Positions 24,941-55,190 of a stretch of 64,000 nt of DNA are shown here, piece by piece (the stretch's first letter is position 1; every line of letters starts with the position of its first letter). Below the pieces are notes generated by a model that was not told where the DNA came from, made no database searches, and saw only the letters and a program-made list of their open reading frames with translations. Both the position numbers and the translations under genes were made by a program. This DNA is from Obrimoposthia wandeli (lineage: Eukaryota): NCBI GenBank assembly GCA_977020255.1, contig CDROCS010001209.1:124001-188000 (forward strand), read 5' to 3'.

Positions 24941-25025
24941 TGGTGCGGAAGGAGAGACTTGAACTCTCACACCTTGCGGCGCCAGAACCTAAATCTGGTG
25001 CGTCTACCAATTCCGCCACTTCCGC
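24941..25025 (-). tRNA. tRNA-Leu(TAG), type A
   Basis: GCGGAAG..CCAGA-TTTAGGT-TCTGG..CTTCCGC-ACCA, 85 nt. Confidence 0.97.
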
Positions 25026-25108
25026 ATATCTAATTTGCTCTTAACGAGCTTACATCGCTTAACTATAAGTCTTCTTGGTAAGAAGTAATCAAGCCACATA
25101 ATTAAATG

Positions 25109-25183
25109 TGGCAGGGCTACCTGGATTCGAACCAGGGGATGGCGGCATCAAAAGCCGCTGCCTTACCGCTTGGCGATAGCCCT
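25109..25183 (-). tRNA. tRNA-Gln(TTG)
   Basis: AGGGCTA..GCGGC-TTTTGAT-GCCGC..TAGCCCT-GCCA, 75 nt. Confidence 0.97.
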
Positions 25184-25241
25184 ACAGTTGTTCACTTAAG
25201 AACAGTTCTCTATTTAAAGAGAATAATAAGTCTTTAGAGAA

Positions 25242-25326
25242 TGGTGCGGAAAGAGAGACTTGAACTCTCACACCTTGCGGCGCCAGAACCTAAATCTGGT
25301 GCGTCTACCAATTCCGCCATTCCCGC
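25242..25326 (-). tRNA. tRNA-Leu(TAG), type B acceptor stem
   Basis: Acceptor GCGGGAA/TTTCCGC; otherwise as type A. Confidence 0.95.
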
Positions 25327-25442
25327 ATATATCTCATTCGAATAAATCCGATTGAGTGTTCTCTAGAGCTTATTGTACAGATTGAAGAACTGGTAAAGCT
25401 CAATCTGTATTACTGTGATAAATCACAGTCACAAAGTATAAA

Positions 25443-25527
25443 TGGTGCGGAAGGAGAGACTTGAACTCTCACACCTTGCGGCGCCAGAACCTAAATCTGG
25501 TGCGTCTACCAATTCCGCCACTTCCGC
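25443..25527 (-). tRNA. tRNA-Leu(TAG), type A
   Basis: Same sequence as 24941-25025. Confidence 0.97.
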
Positions 25528-25572
25528 GTATTTATACTTTTACCATAAATCGACTCAAAAAGAGAAGAAAAA

Positions 25573-25649
25573 TGGTGGCTACGACGGGATTCGAACCTGT
25601 GACCCCATCATTATGAGTGATGTGCTCTAACCAACTGAGCTACGTAGCC
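25573..25649 (-). tRNA. Elongator tRNA-Met(CAT)
   Basis: GGCTACG..CATCA-CTCATAA-TGATG..CGTAGCC-ACCA, 77 nt. Confidence 0.97.
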
Positions 25650-25715
25650 ATTTATTTATGCCGCTTAACTGTTTAGCTTCTTAAAAAGAAGTTAATCAAG
25701 CCACATAATTAAATG

Positions 25716-25790
25716 TGGCAGGGCTACCTGGATTCGAACCAGGGGATGGCGGCATCAAAAGCCGCTGCCTTACCGCTTGGCGATAGCCCT
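25716..25790 (-). tRNA. tRNA-Gln(TTG)
   Basis: Same sequence as 25109-25183. Confidence 0.97.
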
Positions 25791-25875
25791 ACAATGTTTC
25801 ATCAAAAATCGTTTGTTCAAATGCCATGTTTATTTAAAACAATCGACTTAAGAACAATTCTCTTCGCAAAGAGAA

Positions 25876-25960
25876 TGGTGCGGAAGGAGAGACTTGAACT
25901 CTCACACCTTGCGGCGCCAGAACCTAAATCTGGTGCGTCTACCAATTCCGCCACTTCCGC
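25876..25960 (-). tRNA. tRNA-Leu(TAG), type A
   Basis: Repeat copy. Confidence 0.97.
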
Positions 25961-26043
25961 ATATCTAATTTGCTCTTAACGAGCTTACATCGCTTAACTA
26001 TAAGTCTTCTTGGTAAGAAGTAATCAAGCCACATAATTAAATG

Positions 26044-26118
26044 TGGCAGGGCTACCTGGATTCGAACCAGGGGATGGCGGCATCAAAAGCCGCTGCCTTA
26101 CCGCTTGGCGATAGCCCT
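26044..26118 (-). tRNA. tRNA-Gln(TTG)
   Basis: Repeat copy. Confidence 0.97.
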
Positions 26119-26150
26119 ACAGGTGTATCTTTTAATAAGTCTTTAGAGAA

Positions 26151-26235
26151 TGGTGCGGAAAGAGAGACTTGAACTCTCACACCTTGCGGCGCCAGAACCT
26201 AAATCTGGTGCGTCTACCAATTCCGCCATTCCCGC
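26151..26235 (-). tRNA. tRNA-Leu(TAG), type B
   Basis: GCGGGAA/TTTCCGC acceptor. Confidence 0.95.
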
Positions 26236-26368
26236 ATATTGTCTCATTCGAATAAATCCGATTGAGTATATCTCTAAAGCTTATTGTACAGATCTAAGAA
26301 TTGGTAAAAACTCGAACTGTACATGTGTTAATCACCGAATGATTAACGATTCTTTATTCAAAGAATAA

Positions 26369-26453
26369 TGGTGCGGAAGGAGAGACTTGAACTCTCACAC
26401 CTTGCGGCGCCAGAACCTAAATCTGGTGCGTCTACCAATTCCGCCACTTCCGC
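26369..26453 (-). tRNA. tRNA-Leu(TAG), type A
   Basis: Repeat copy. Confidence 0.97.
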
Positions 26454-26536
26454 ATATCTAATTTGCTCTTAACGAGCTTACATCGCTTAACTATAAGTCT
26501 TCTTGGTAAGAAGTAATCAAGCCACATAATTAAATG

Positions 26537-26611
26537 TGGCAGGGCTACCTGGATTCGAACCAGGGGATGGCGGCATCAAAAGCCGCTGCCTTACCGCTTG
26601 GCGATAGCCCT
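26537..26611 (-). tRNA. tRNA-Gln(TTG)
   Basis: Repeat copy. Confidence 0.97.
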
Positions 26612-26670
26612 ACAGTTGTTCACTTAAGAACAGTTCTCTCGTGAAAGAGAATAATAAGTCTTTAGAGAAA

Positions 26671-26755
26671 TGGTGCGGAAAGAGAGACTTGAACTCTCAC
26701 ACCTTGCGGCGCCAGAACCTAAATCTGGTGCGTCTACCAATTCCGCCATTCCCGC
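26671..26755 (-). tRNA. tRNA-Leu(TAG), type B
   Basis: GCGGGAA/TTTCCGC acceptor. Confidence 0.95.
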
Positions 26756-26871
26756 ATATATCTCATTCGAATAAATCCGATTGAGTGTTCTCTAGAGCTT
26801 ATTGTACAGATTGAAGAACTGGTAAAGCTCAATCTGTATTACTGTGATAAATCACAGTCACAAAGTATAAA

Positions 26872-26956
26872 TGGTGCGGAAGGAGAGACTTGAACTCTCA
26901 CACCTTGCGGCGCCAGAACCTAAATCTGGTGCGTCTACCAATTCCGCCACTTCCGC
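26872..26956 (-). tRNA. tRNA-Leu(TAG), type A
   Basis: Repeat copy. Confidence 0.97.
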
Positions 26957-27001
26957 GTATTTATACTTTTACCATAAATCGACTCAAAAAGAGAAGAGAA
27001 A

Positions 27002-27078
27002 TGGTGGCTACGACGGGATTCGAACCTGTGACCCCATCATTATGAGTGATGTGCTCTAACCAACTGAGCTACGTAGCC
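27002..27078 (-). tRNA. Elongator tRNA-Met(CAT)
   Basis: Repeat copy. Confidence 0.97.
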
Positions 27079-27144
27079 ATTTATTTATGCCGCTTAACTG
27101 TTTAGCTTCTTAAAAAGAAGTTAATCAAGCCACATACTTAAATG

Positions 27145-27219
27145 TGGCAGGGCTACCTGGATTCGAACCAGGGGATGGCGGCATCAAAAGCCGCTGCCTT
27201 ACCGCTTGGCGATAGCCCT
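27145..27219 (-). tRNA. tRNA-Gln(TTG)
   Basis: Repeat copy. Confidence 0.97.
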
Positions 27220-27304
27220 ACAATGTTTCATCAAAAATCGTTTGTTCAAATGCCATGTTTATTTAAAACAATCGACTTAAGAACAGTTCTCTTCGCAAAG
27301 AGAA

Positions 27305-27389
27305 TGGTGCGGAAGGAGAGACTTGAACTCTCACACCTTGCGGCGCCAGAACCTAAATCTGGTGCGTCTACCAATTCCGCCACTTCCGC
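27305..27389 (-). tRNA. tRNA-Leu(TAG), type A
   Basis: Repeat copy. Confidence 0.97.
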
Positions 27390-27437
27390 ATCTGGTAATT
27401 TTACATCTTGCGATGCTTCATCTCAAAAGAGTGAAGA

Positions 27438-27514
27438 TGGTGGCTACGACGGGATTCGAACCTGTGACCCCATCATTATGAGTGATGTGCTCTAACCAAC
27501 TGAGCTACGTAGCC
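27438..27514 (-). tRNA. Elongator tRNA-Met(CAT)
   Basis: Repeat copy. Confidence 0.97.
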
Positions 27515-27581
27515 ATTTTATTTATGCCGCTTAACTATTTGCTACTTAAAAAAGAAAGCAATTAAGCCACATAATTAAATG

Positions 27582-27656
27582 TGGCAGAGCTACCTGGATT
27601 CGAACCAGGGGATGGCGGCATCAAAAGCCGCTGCCTTACCGCTTGGCGATAGCCCT
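27582..27656 (-). tRNA. tRNA-Gln(TTG) variant with C70U (G3:U70 pair)
   Basis: Plus strand reads tggcagAgcta instead of tggcagGgcta at 27588; the spurious ORF translation changes from MWQG to MWQS accordingly. Confidence 0.9.
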
Positions 27657-27741
27657 ACAATGTTTCATCAAAAATCGTTTGTTCAAATGCCATGTTTATT
27701 TAAAACAATCGACTTAAGAACAGTTCTCTTCGCAAAGAGAA

Positions 27742-27826
27742 TGGTGCGGAAGGAGAGACTTGAACTCTCACACCTTGCGGCGCCAGAACCTAAATCTGGT
27801 GCGTCTACCAATTCCGCCACTTCCGC
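27742..27826 (-). tRNA. tRNA-Leu(TAG), type A
   Basis: Repeat copy. Confidence 0.97.
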
Positions 27827-27873
27827 ATCTGGTAATTTTACATCTTGCGATGCTTCATCTCAAAGAGTGAAGA

Positions 27874-27950
27874 TGGTGGCTACGACGGGATTCGAACCTG
27901 TGACCCCATCATTATGAGTGATGTGCTCTAACCAACTGAGCTACGTAGCC
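27874..27950 (-). tRNA. Elongator tRNA-Met(CAT)
   Basis: Repeat copy. Confidence 0.97.
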
Positions 27951-28017
27951 ATTTTATTTATGTCGCTTAACTATTTGCTACTTAAAAAAGAAAGCAATTA
28001 AGCCACATAATTAAATG

Positions 28018-28092
28018 TGGCAGGGCTACCTGGATTCGAACCAGGGGATGGCGGCATCAAAAGCCGCTGCCTTACCGCTTGGCGATAGCCCT
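28018..28092 (-). tRNA. tRNA-Gln(TTG)
   Basis: Repeat copy. Confidence 0.97.
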
Positions 28093-28176
28093 ACAGTGTT
28101 TCATCAAAAACCGTTTGTTCAAAGCCCTGTTTATTTAAAACAAGTCATTTAAGAACAGTTCTCTTCGCAAAGAGAA

Positions 28177-28261
28177 TGGTGCGGAAGGAGAGACTTGAAC
28201 TCTCACACCTTGCGGCGCCAGAACCTAAATCTGGTGCGTCTACCAATTCCGCCACTTCCGC
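28177..28261 (-). tRNA. tRNA-Leu(TAG), type A
   Basis: Repeat copy. Confidence 0.97.
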
Positions 28262-28309
28262 ATCTGGTAATTTTACATCTTGCGATGCTTCATCTCAAAA
28301 GAGTGAAGA

Positions 28310-28386
28310 TGGTGGCTACGACGGGATTCGAACCTGTGACCCCATCATTATGAGTGATGTGCTCTAACCAACTGAGCTACGTAGCC
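28310..28386 (-). tRNA. Elongator tRNA-Met(CAT), first gene of the operon
   Basis: Repeat copy; directly downstream of the promoter. Confidence 0.97.
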
Positions 28387-52815: not shown

Positions 52816-53017
52816 GTGCTTTCCTTAAAGTCGTGGGTTAGTGGCTACAAGATAATCAATGAATGAAAACGTTATGATGATTTGGATCAATGGTTGGTAA
52901 GATGTTTAATTTGTGTTTTTAATGATGTGTTTTAGATCACTTAAGTAACGCTGTTTCCTCTAGTTGTGTGATTGATGAGCAACTGAATCTAGAATTTAAA
53001 AAAATGGCTTGTAAAAC

Positions 53018-53053
53018 TTGCTTAATATTCAGTGCTGAGTATTATAGGCGACC
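53018..53053 (+). promoter_or_regulatory. Probable sigma70 promoter of the tRNA-Pro array
   Basis: TTGCTT (53018-53023), 16-bp spacer, TATTAT (53040-53045), then aggcgacc; AT-rich upstream. Confidence 0.6.
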
Positions 53054-53078
53054 TCAACAGCACTCCTGTTGATTATGT

Positions 53079-53177
53079 CGGTGAATAGTAGAGCTTGGTA
53101 GCGCATCCTGATTTTAGGTATAGCGGACCAGAGGGACGGGGGTAAACCTTTACCTTGTTTAGCCTCTTCACTGATAA
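53079..53177 (+). ncRNA. tRNA-Pro-derived 99-nt element (type B), ends ATAA instead of ACCA
   Basis: Pro acceptor and D-loop sequence retained; anticodon region cctgattttaggtatagcgg; T loop aaacctttaccttgtttag. Confidence 0.75.
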
Positions 53178-53241
53178 CTATTATTTCTATTGGATGTAAG
53201 TCGGATAGAATCAATCTGGTAAGATTTAAAATATACAATGT

Positions 53242-53258
53242 CGGTGAATAGCGCAGCT

Positions 53259-53291
<33 letters not shown>

Positions 53292-53318
53292 GGGGTTCGA
53301 ATCCCTCTTCACCGACCA
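53242..53318 (+). tRNA. tRNA-Pro(TGG), canonical
   Basis: CGGTGAA..TCTGG-TTTGGGA-CCAGA..GGGGG-TTCGAAT-CCCTC-TTCACCG-ACCA, 77 nt. Confidence 0.97.
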
Positions 53319-53382
53319 CTATTATTTCTATTGGATGTAAGTCGAATAGAATCAATCTGGTAAGATTTAAAATATACAATGT

Positions 53383-53481
53383 CGGTGAATAGTAGAGCTT
53401 GGTAGCGCATCCTGACTTTAGGTATAGCGGACCAGAGGGTCGGGGGTAAACCTTTACCTTGTTTAGCCTCTTCACTGATAA
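53383..53481 (+). ncRNA. tRNA-Pro-derived 99-nt element (type B)
   Basis: As 53079-53177 but with cctgactttagg. Confidence 0.75.
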
Positions 53482-53545
53482 TTATTATTTCTATTGGATG
53501 TAAGTCGAATAGAATCAATCTGGTAAGATTTAAAATATACGATGT

Positions 53546-53644
53546 CGGTGAATAGTAGAGCTTGGTAGCGCATCCTGACTTTAGGTATAGCGGACCAGAG
53601 GGTCGGGGGTAAACCTTTACCTTGTTTAGCCTCTTCACTGATAA
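53546..53644 (+). ncRNA. tRNA-Pro-derived 99-nt element (type B)
   Basis: Same body as 53383-53481. Confidence 0.75.
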
Positions 53645-53708
53645 TTATTATTTCTATTGGATGTAAGTCGGATAGAATCAATCTGGTAAGATTTAAAATA
53701 TACAATGT

Positions 53709-53725
53709 CGGTGAATAGCGCAGCT

Positions 53726-53758
<33 letters not shown>

Positions 53759-53785
53759 GGGGTTCGAATCCCTCTTCACCGACCA
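53709..53785 (+). tRNA. tRNA-Pro(TGG), canonical
   Basis: Same sequence as 53242-53318. Confidence 0.97.
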
Positions 53786-53849
53786 CTATTATTTCTATTG
53801 GACGCAAGTTGGATAGAATGAATCTGGTAAGATTTAAAATATACAATGT

Positions 53850-53866
53850 CGGTGAATAGCGCAGCT

Positions 53867-53899
<33 letters not shown>

Positions 53900-53926
53900 G
53901 GGGTTCGAATCCCTCTTCACCGACCA
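53850..53926 (+). tRNA. tRNA-Pro(TGG), canonical
   Basis: Same sequence as 53242-53318. Confidence 0.97.
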
Positions 53927-53990
53927 CTATTATTTCTATTAGATGTAAGTCGAATAGAATCAATCTGGTAAGATTCAAAATATACAATAT

Positions 53991-54089
53991 TGGTGAATAG
54001 TAGAGCTTGGTAGCGCATCCTGATTTTAGGTATAGCGGACCAGAGGGTCGGGGGTAAACCTTTACCTTATTTAGCCTCTTCACCGACCA
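53991..54089 (+). ncRNA. tRNA-Pro-derived 99-nt element (type B body) with intact CACCG-ACCA 3' end
   Basis: Type B inserts, U1 instead of C1, canonical 3' acceptor strand and CCA. Confidence 0.75.
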
Positions 54090-54153
54090 CTATTATTTTT
54101 ATTGGACGCAAGTCGAATAGAATCAATCTGGTAAGATTCAAAATATACAATGT

Positions 54154-54232
54154 CGGTGAATAGCGCAGCTTGGTAGCGTTATCTTGCTAAAATCAGAGAG
54201 GGTCGGGGGTTCGAATCCCTCTTCACCGACCA
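54154..54232 (+). ncRNA. tRNA-Pro-derived 79-nt element (type C) with replaced anticodon arm
   Basis: Near-canonical D arm, canonical T arm, acceptor and CCA; anticodon region ttatcttgctaaaatcagaga. Confidence 0.75.
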
Positions 54233-54238
54233 CTTTCG

Positions 54239-54267
54239 AAAGCCTCGTCTTAGGACGAGGCTTTTTT
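54239..54267 (+). terminator. Intrinsic terminator of the tRNA-Pro array
   Basis: aaagcctcgtc-ttag-gacgaggctttttt. Confidence 0.9.
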
Positions 54268-54329: not shown

Positions 54330-55190
54330 TTAGCACTTAACCTTTTTGCTTTTTGTCAGTTGAGTAACCGTGAACCCATTCTGCTTTAACAAATTAGGTA
54401 ATCCTTTATCACCAAATAAATGGAATGCGCCTACTACAATCATAAATTTACCTTGTTGGTAAGGTGAGCCATTGGTTAATTGGTTAGCCCAGTCTTCATT
54501 ACGATCAAAAATAAGTACATTATCGATAGCTTCACTGTGTTGGCTTTCTTCAAATAGCGTGGTTAATTTTTGGCTGTCGCCTGATTTCCAAGCATTAATC
54601 AGACATGTGAATTCGCTACTCATTTTCTCCCAGTCATCAATCGATGTTGTGAGCATTTCTTTACCGTGATCGGGCATACTTTTGAGCATTGATAGTTGTT
54701 GTTCAACGCTTTCTAATTCGAGAATAGGTAGATCTTCACTCATTGCCCTTCTTAGTAAAATAGTGTCAATACCTTGCTCTGCACTCAAGCCCAATTGGGT
54801 GGCAAGTGACATTTGAATACTGATCACAGTTAACCAAGGTGGGTTTTTACTGAGGGGGGAATAAGGCAGTTTTAAGTCATTGGCAATTGAGGCGAGTTTT
54901 TCAAGCTGCTGATGATTCAGCATTGATGATGTAGTTGGCCCAGATATATCTAAAGTCGCTTGAGAGGGGCGTAGAATATTGGCTTCAACAACAAGGCTGT
55001 CAGCCGTTTTCCAATGCTCTAGAAAGGCACTGGGTAAAGGATACATATCACGAGTGCCTGCATGTACAGAGCCTAAAATAATAAATTCGCGGTTAGCGTC
55101 TTTTACTTGCCAAACAATAGGCTCGGCAAAAACGGATGTTGTGATAAATGGCAGTACCATAAGTGCTTTTGAAAACAAATTTTTGAACAT
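54330..55190 (-). CDS. ybaP: TraB/GumN family protein (YbaP-like)
   Basis: Signal peptide; GSVHAG, ELESVEQQL, RNEDW, VVGAFHL; neighbourhood as in E. coli ybaK-ybaP-copA. Confidence 0.8.
   Translation of the reverse strand: MFKNLFSKALMVLPFITTSVFAEPIVWQVKDANREFIILGSVHAGTRDMYPLPSAFLEHWKTADSLVVEANILRPSQATLDISGPTTSSMLNHQQLEKLASIANDLKLPYSPLSKNPPWLTVISIQMSLATQLGLSAEQGIDTILLRRAMSEDLPILELESVEQQLSMLKSMPDHGKEMLTTSIDDWEKMSSEFTCLINAWKSGDSQKLTTLFEESQHSEAIDNVLIFDRNEDWANQLTNGSPYQQGKFMIVVGAFHLFGDKGLPNLLKQNGFTVTQLTKSKKVKC

Follow-up and report, generated by a model that had tools for sequence, protein, structure and literature searches.

How a tandem tRNA array comes to carry non-decoding units among its genuine genes, and whether such units do anything, is the question raised by a tRNA-Pro operon in the 64,000-nt stretch of DNA analyzed here (contig CDROCS010001209.1 of assembly GCA_977020255.1, positions 124,001 to 188,000 of the forward strand; hereafter the window). 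The operon consists of three genuine tRNA-Pro(UGG) genes interspersed with four 99-nt units (B) and one 79-nt unit (C). The B and C units are non-decoding derivatives of tRNA-Pro(UGG), here called pseudo-tRNA-Pro or pseudo-Pro, and the 5' core of B belongs to an old family that recurs across the Vibrionaceae, the family to which the bacterium that supplied this DNA (a Photobacterium, see below) itself belongs.

The status of the individual units follows from tRNA gene prediction and from their sequence differences. ARAGORN calls only the three tRNA-Pro(tgg) genes in the array, plus C as a 79-nt 'tRNA-Phe(aaa)'. Against the Rfam tRNA model (RF00005, gathering threshold 29 bits) the Pro units score 66.9 bits each and C scores 39.5 bits with its anticodon arm unaligned; the B units have no match even at E ≤ 10 and no ARAGORN call. 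These two programs, which had been proposed as a check when the array was first noticed, thus recognize perfect tRNA-Pro(UGG) in the Pro units and nothing in B. About 60 of the 99 nt of B are identical to the neighboring tRNA-Pro, and the differences fall into four patches. The D-stem 5' strand GCGC is changed to GUAG; the anticodon arm UGGUUUGGGA is replaced by CUGAYUUUAGGUAUAGCGGA, a replacement made up of CCUGAYUUUAGG plus UAUAGCG; the T loop UUCGAAUCC is replaced by UAAACCUUUACCUUGUUUAGC; and the 3' end CCGACCA reads CUGAUAA, save in unit 7, which retains CCGACCA. B accordingly has neither a 7-nt anticodon loop on a 5-bp stem nor an intact T loop (UUCGAAU), and its D stem is broken. All four B units carry the junction of AUAGCG with GACCAGAGGG; C does not. 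In C the T loop is intact and the anticodon arm is the stretch TTATCTTGCTAAAATCAGAGA, which includes CTAAAATCAG, the reverse complement (a 10-nt match) of the B loop CTGATTTTAG. Since a search of 67 Photobacterium genomes that allowed up to three mismatches did not recover C, and since a genuine Pro directly precedes the terminator in all relatives examined, C is a recent, private derivative, most likely one that arose from a B-like cassette through loop inversion and deletion.

The lesion that defines B is found well beyond this genome. A 35-nt anticodon-cassette pattern (up to three mismatches) occurs in 10 of 401 sampled Vibrionaceae genomes, all of them Photobacterium and all in the syntenic operon. 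The syntenic locus was compared in 30 Photobacterium species, and in at least 24 of them it includes Pro-like units with a lesion of the B type: GCGCAUC runs into a short hairpin, which is followed by (A)AUAGCG and, without a gap, GACCAGAGGG. The stretch AAUAGCG repeats tRNA positions 6-12 and abuts the anticodon-stem 3' strand, and GAAUAGCG joined to GACCAGAGGG is the remainder of tRNA-Pro once positions 13-38 are deleted. The lesion therefore goes back to one old rearrangement. The exact junction 16-mer ATAGCGGACCAGAGGG is present in 85 of the 401 Vibrionaceae genomes; Photobacterium accounts for 43 (of 67 sampled) and the rest of the family for 42 (of 334). The reversed 16-mer, used as a control, is present in none of the 401. 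In an order-wide sample of 301 genomes the 16-mer matched only members of the Vibrionaceae, and within the window's own assembly it matches only the four B units. The initial annotation had held that the variants are not random decay, and membership of the B core in this old family bears that out; its further suggestion that the variants are conserved applies to the B core across the Vibrionaceae, but not to the private C unit or to two close relatives from which the elements are absent.

Pseudo-Pro elements at every locus inspected belong to operons of the tRNA-Pro or Pro-His type and most often immediately precede a genuine tRNA-Pro. In the commonest form, 'h', a GAGGG-N3-CCCUC hairpin follows the 5' core, and a variable linker (25-40 nt) then leads straight into the genuine tRNA-Pro; this form has no T arm and no 3' acceptor strand. 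Other forms are full-length units with differing T-region insertions, B among them, and further forms are more decayed copies past the operon terminator, each with its own terminator copy. Only the profundum clade and one distant species (G017) have the B form, defined by both cassettes and the full 64-nt spacer. No Rfam 15 model matches the B or 'h' elements. YrlA was considered as an Rfam identity and rejected, its matches being below threshold and spanning pairs of real tRNAs.

In the window the eight units lie head to tail between positions 53079 and 54232 (Table 1), in the order B-Pro-B-B-Pro-Pro-B'-C, where B' is a B unit with a CCA end. Successive units start 163, 141, 163, 163, 141, 141 and 163 bp apart, the longer period belonging to B and the shorter to Pro, and Tandem Repeats Finder detects the array at periods of 163 and 304. 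The array is a single promoter-terminator unit without tRNA-His. Unit alignment, repeat detection and direct reading of the sequence agree with the initial annotation on the number, order and periods of the units and on the single promoter and terminator; they also agree that four variants share two cassettes (all four B units carry both, with a few single-nucleotide differences) and that differences among the spacers are mosaic, with GGACGCAAG in spacers 5 and 7 and GATTCAAAA in spacers 6 and 7. The promoter has a GC-rich discriminator, AGGCGACC, and an A-tract lies upstream of it at 53000-53005. A simple promoter scan did not list this promoter because its -35 element matches at only 3 of 6 positions; its layout is kept in P. 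indicum and in the relatives G039 and G003, and a diverged form occurs in G004, G017, G033 and G040. The first B unit reads GGGACGG, versus GGGTCGG in the other units. B' has T as its first base and a G>A change in the T cassette, and a B-with-CCA form like it is present in G039 and G003. Three overlapping antisense open reading frames of 109-203 amino acids (53029-54083, minus strand) are mechanical products of the repeats.

Table 1. Features of the tRNA-Pro array and of the RNA-library contigs that cover it, in window coordinates
Feature	Position	Strand	Basis or remark
Stable-RNA-type promoter	53018-53053	+	-35 TTGCTT 53018-53023, 16-nt spacer, -10 TATTAT 53040-53045; read directly
B unit 1 (99 nt, pseudo-tRNA-Pro)	53079-53177	+	First after promoter; no tRNA call
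Conserved pseudo-Pro core, B unit 1	53106-53135	+	Hairpin CCUGAUUUUAGG, then (U)AUAGCG joined to GACCAGAGGG
Genuine tRNA-Pro(UGG) copy 1	53242-53318	+	ARAGORN; Rfam tRNA 66.9 bits
B unit 2 (array unit 3)	53383-53481	+	Loop variant GACTTT
B unit 3 (array unit 4)	53546-53644	+	Unit alignment
Same pseudo-Pro core, other B units	53410-53439, 53573-53602, 54018-54047	+	Pattern searches
Genuine tRNA-Pro(UGG) copy 2	53709-53785	+	ARAGORN; Rfam tRNA 66.9 bits
Genuine tRNA-Pro(UGG) copy 3	53850-53926	+	ARAGORN; Rfam tRNA 66.9 bits
B' unit (array unit 7)	53991-54089	+	B cassettes with genuine 3' end CACCGACCA
C unit	54154-54232	+	Genuine acceptor, D and T arms; anticodon arm replaced by TTATCTTGCTAAAATCAGAGA
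Intrinsic terminator	54238-54265	+	12-bp stem, then T run; kept in relatives
RNA-library contig X39	53292-53437		
RNA-library contig X2 record 10	53349-53540		Covers B unit 2
RNA-library contig X1 record 6	53566-53694		Covers B unit 3

The contig is bacterial and lies inside a 1.35-Gb assembly of 6912 contigs, apparently a eukaryote genome project. The gene next to the array (54330-55190, minus strand) encodes a protein 94-96% identical to its homologues in P. profundum ATCC BAA-1252, P. indicum, P. frigidiphilum and G039, a complete relative genome with a closed chromosome of 4,085,304 bp; this places the organism in the profundum clade of Photobacterium, and it is a bacterial associate or a contaminant of the presumed eukaryotic project. 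The syntenic locus varies among these relatives. In P. indicum it holds four genuine Pro genes and nothing else, and in P. profundum ATCC BAA-1252 at least four genuine Pro genes up to the contig end. The P. frigidiphilum locus has B units, with B again first after the promoter. The syntenic array of G039 has 14 units, among them full B units, B units with CCA ends, and chimeras that join a B 5' half to a Pro 3' half (151 bp) or a Pro 5' half to a B 3' half (152 and 160 bp), so the two B cassettes can be separated by recombination. Unequal crossing-over and patchy gene conversion reshuffle the array, and the exchange of sequence between real copies, first proposed from the spacer mosaics, is thereby seen directly in a complete genome. 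Related short-read assemblies break inside the tRNA-Pro array (contig ends L008, L010 and L037), and copy numbers and pseudo-unit counts from draft genomes are for that reason lower bounds.

Evidence on transcription comes from assembled Logan contigs of public runs, which give no ends, levels or strand. Metatranscriptome contigs from three runs in three studies span B units and their spacers (Table 1). Given also that the variants lie inside one promoter-terminator unit, we infer that the B units are co-transcribed with the genuine tRNA-Pro genes, as the initial annotation had assumed. In a further run, X25, contigs match the B-specific interval 53379-53512 exactly, at a depth of 32.9 versus 14-15 on unique flanks, which fits two identical B copies.

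The 5' core is kept over long distances while the T arm and 3' end drift, and this argues that the core is under constraint. The chances that it is so constrained, probably for a role in cis within the tRNA-Pro operon, may be put at about even. Within the clade, nucleotide diversity among 15 B units from three genomes is 0.017 in the anticodon cassette, 0.022 in the tRNA-like 5' part and 0.028 in the middle part; it is 0.058 in the spacer, 0.089 in the T cassette and 0.107 at the 3' acceptor end. Judged by these values, the T arm and 3' end of B evolve as neutral sequence would. The genuine tRNA-Pro genes have a diversity of 0.003, against which B is far less constrained. As the T cassette and 3' end are at least as diverse as the spacers and the T region has no consistent fold, a tRNA shape is not under selection. 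Pairing in the hairpin is kept with varied sequence (UCCUG/UAGGA, UCUCAG/CUGAGA, UCCAA/UUGGA, CCAG/CUGG), and most variants fold there with z < -2. On alignment A1, 75% of the cells pair and three of the five pairs change on both sides; cells with double changes number 27, versus 13.6 ± 3.0 after shuffling, a count reached in 0 of 500 shuffles. On a tree of the neighboring protein, the UCCUG hairpin type appears in five deep clades.

The alternative that survives best is that the units are neutral tRNA-Pro pseudogenes, hitchhiking in a tandem array, copied by crossing-over and conversion, and transcribed as passengers that are then degraded. This is a substantial possibility, if some way short of an even one. 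Beyond the neutral-like diversity of the T cassette and 3' end, it would account for D stems that are broken differently in different lineages, for at least three unrelated T-region lesions, for the decayed acceptor strands of the post-terminator copies and for the privacy of C to the window's genome; the chimeras, in turn, prove that array turnover is rapid. A number of other observations weigh against a selected core. No pseudo-Pro copy is present in P. indicum or P. profundum ATCC BAA-1252 (G001 and G002, the closest relatives), where the element has been lost and is dispensable, and 316 of the 401 genomes lack the exact 16-mer, which has a patchy distribution. Within the clade, segregating sites (1 of 20 in the core versus 12 of 64 in the spacer) differ in the expected direction, but not significantly. 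The hairpin shuffle test is inflated by relatedness, and the two-sided hairpin changes could arise via template-switch mutation of a quasi-palindrome; the C unit shows a loop inversion of just this type. A structured arm in the T cassette, suggested by the UAAAC/GUUUA stem of the window, was rejected, since the folds of 47 variants differ, with z of about -1. A long-range stem between the hairpin 3' strand and the linker was likewise rejected as a general feature of the 'h' relatives, being lineage-limited (mean 6.4 versus 5.3 shuffled), and it is absent from B. Finally, the RNA-library contigs over B could stem from DNA carry-over.

Neutral copying is less easily reconciled with the junction itself. 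The exact 16-mer is retained in those 85 genomes, letter for letter across genera, while the adjoining linker is too diverged to align (alignment A2). On either side of the junction no more than 10 nt are identical to tRNA, and so short a stretch would not let conversion from real tRNA genes keep the junction intact. The copy at L103 retains an intact core despite a decayed tRNA-like 5' end. In addition, pseudo-units are specific to Pro operons: the same window has a tandem array of 23 tRNA-Met/Gln/Leu genes (24941-28386, minus strand; 55-71 bits for each unit) that contains none, so the pseudo-Pro units are not generic array decay.

A model for the locus may be drawn from these features. Pseudo-tRNA-Pro is an old Vibrionaceae family in which the anticodon arm gave way to a short hairpin and a second copy of positions 6-12, and unit number and order change via unequal crossing-over and patchy gene conversion. 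One stable-RNA promoter would transcribe the pseudo-units along with the genuine tRNA-Pro genes, and a 5' core of about 60 nt would be retained over long evolutionary distances as an RNA element within the tRNA-Pro operon. Its role would most likely lie in the processing or expression of the adjacent tRNA-Pro, or in a by-product small RNA. One proposal, whose chances fall just short of even, is that tRNA-Pro operons of the Vibrionaceae contain in this core (the tRNA-Pro 5' half, the small hairpin and AAUAGCGGACCAGAGGG) an RNA element that is under selection and has not been described. Most lineages add the GAGGG-N3-CCCUC hairpin directly before a genuine tRNA-Pro; if the proposal holds, the B units of the window would be one lineage's version. 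The core would then act in cis as a leader or a processing module, or else be freed by RNase P as a small RNA, and the conserved AAUAGCGGACC segment could be a candidate seed for a small-RNA or mRNA target.

A quite different reading, favored by the initial annotation, is that these are true tRNA mimics: tRNA-shaped RNAs that are charged by prolyl-tRNA synthetase (ProRS), or that act as decoys for ProRS, modification enzymes or anticodon nucleases. The acceptor stem of B can still pair (CGGUGAA/UUCACUG, with one G-U pair), B' and C retain ACCA, and C exceeds the Rfam tRNA gathering score. However, the absence of any tRNA score for B at E ≤ 10 is matched by its structure: the T loop is destroyed, the D stem is broken and a 7-nt anticodon loop is lacking, and the minimum free energy folds are not cloverleaves (z of -0.9 to -1.2). 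The hairpin loop, of 3-7 nt, shows no conserved anticodon. ProRS of E. coli recognizes its tRNA mainly by anticodon bases G35 and G36, and both are absent here. Variation is greatest in the T arm and 3' end, at or above the level of the spacers, and because these parts drift freely B cannot work as a tRNA or as a faithful mimic; the 'h' form, found family-wide, does without a T arm and 3' acceptor strand altogether. A pseudo-tRNA with a non-translational role does exist in Bacillus cereus (PMC3399842), but for the present units mimicry is very improbable. Weaker still, and hardly credible, is the idea that misassembly or collapse of a simple tRNA-Pro array produced the variant units: the assemblies of relatives do break at the array, but three species, assembled independently and one of them with a closed 4.09-Mb chromosome, all have B units, contigs of an independent run match B exactly at about twice the flank depth, and the family motif is present in 85 genomes.

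Further variation is seen at related loci. The long-range stem holds up in one non-Photobacterium lineage (8 bp, P ≤ 0.02 versus shuffles) and borderline in one Photobacterium lineage. In L083:1459-1771, L087, L088, L089 and L092, the hairpin 3' strand UCUUGAGA can pair without mismatch with UCUCAAGA, which lies about 45 nt further on, in the linker; the 8-bp stem in that non-Photobacterium lineage would compete with the local hairpin. The hairpin loop of many pseudo-Pro elements includes GCUCUU(G/U), the boxA antitermination core, as in L083, L086, L087-L089 and L092 (non-Photobacterium), in type D of L039 and in L040. The B units of the window lack this boxA-like GCUCUU, their loop reading GAUUUU, and the resemblance may be chance or a clue. 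The Pro-like units that follow the terminator in many Photobacterium (L039:2160-2460, L045:1700-2000, L047:1700-2000, L072 and L075:524-980) have decayed acceptor 5' strands, and in several species an insertion of about 14-20 nt interrupts the terminator copies behind them. At L106 (G037:C1:2719900-2721300), a second locus, there are five pseudo-Pro units, each with a terminator, and no tRNA gene was detected in the stretch.

Units of this kind have reportedly been described before. In 1988 Giroux, Beaudet and Cedergren reportedly found, in work published in the Journal of Bacteriology, tRNA(Pro)-like pseudogenes in a P. phosphoreum cluster of tRNA(Pro) and tRNA(His) genes that is highly repetitive, and in 1989 Giroux and Cedergren are said to have contrasted that cluster with Vibrio harveyi. 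The 1989 paper is cited as reference 35 in PMC4041420. The window units are likewise derived from tRNA-Pro and embedded in a tandem tRNA-Pro cluster of a Photobacterium. The P. phosphoreum pseudogenes reportedly resemble B in being tRNA-Pro-derived, non-cloverleaf units within a repetitive tandem operon, and repeat recombination is invoked for both arrays; the P. phosphoreum cluster is said to include tRNA-His, whereas the present operon does not. In another Photobacterium (G020), clusters of the type Arg-His-pseudo-Pro-His-Pro and Pro-His-pseudo-Pro-pseudo-pseudo-Pro carry the same core and fit that description. We infer that the window units are the same kind of element as the P. phosphoreum pseudogenes. 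A caveat about that cluster in the initial annotation was right as far as it can be checked. Full-text literature searches did not find the core motif in print and returned nothing relevant on Photobacterium tRNA pseudogenes, and within these and the Rfam searches the conservation of the core across the family appears to be undescribed.

In E. coli, non-tRNA segments of tRNA transcripts, some with partial tRNA sequence, are freed by tRNA processing and can act as small RNAs; spacer and trailer RNAs of tRNA operons include the 3'ETS-leuZ sponge, and rtT and the tRNA-linked repeats of tyrT. These offer a looser analogy to pseudo-Pro, as non-tRNA segments of tRNA primary transcripts. The E. coli repeats copy the tRNA 3' end and lie downstream, whereas in pseudo-Pro it is the 5' half that is copied, upstream of or between tRNAs. 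Among regulatory pseudo-tRNAs, the tRNAOther of Bacillus cereus is a precedent, since both it and pseudo-Pro are tRNA-derived and do not work in translation, yet are retained (PMC3399842). However, tRNAOther is a single gene beside a genomic island with a deletion phenotype (PMC3399842), while pseudo-Pro occurs as multi-copy units inside a tRNA operon and, unlike tRNAOther, has no tRNA-like T arm.

The array illustrates unequal crossing-over and gene conversion in tandem tRNA genes. Its pseudogene lesion is not private to one genome: a single junction is found exact in about one fifth of the sampled Vibrionaceae, beside tRNA-Pro and amid drifting sequence. If selection is not responsible, array dynamics can preserve a dead tRNA for a long time. 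If it is, the Vibrionaceae would hold an unrecognized tRNA-derived RNA element within a highly expressed operon, an element that experiments in P. profundum, Vibrio species or similarly tractable strains could address.

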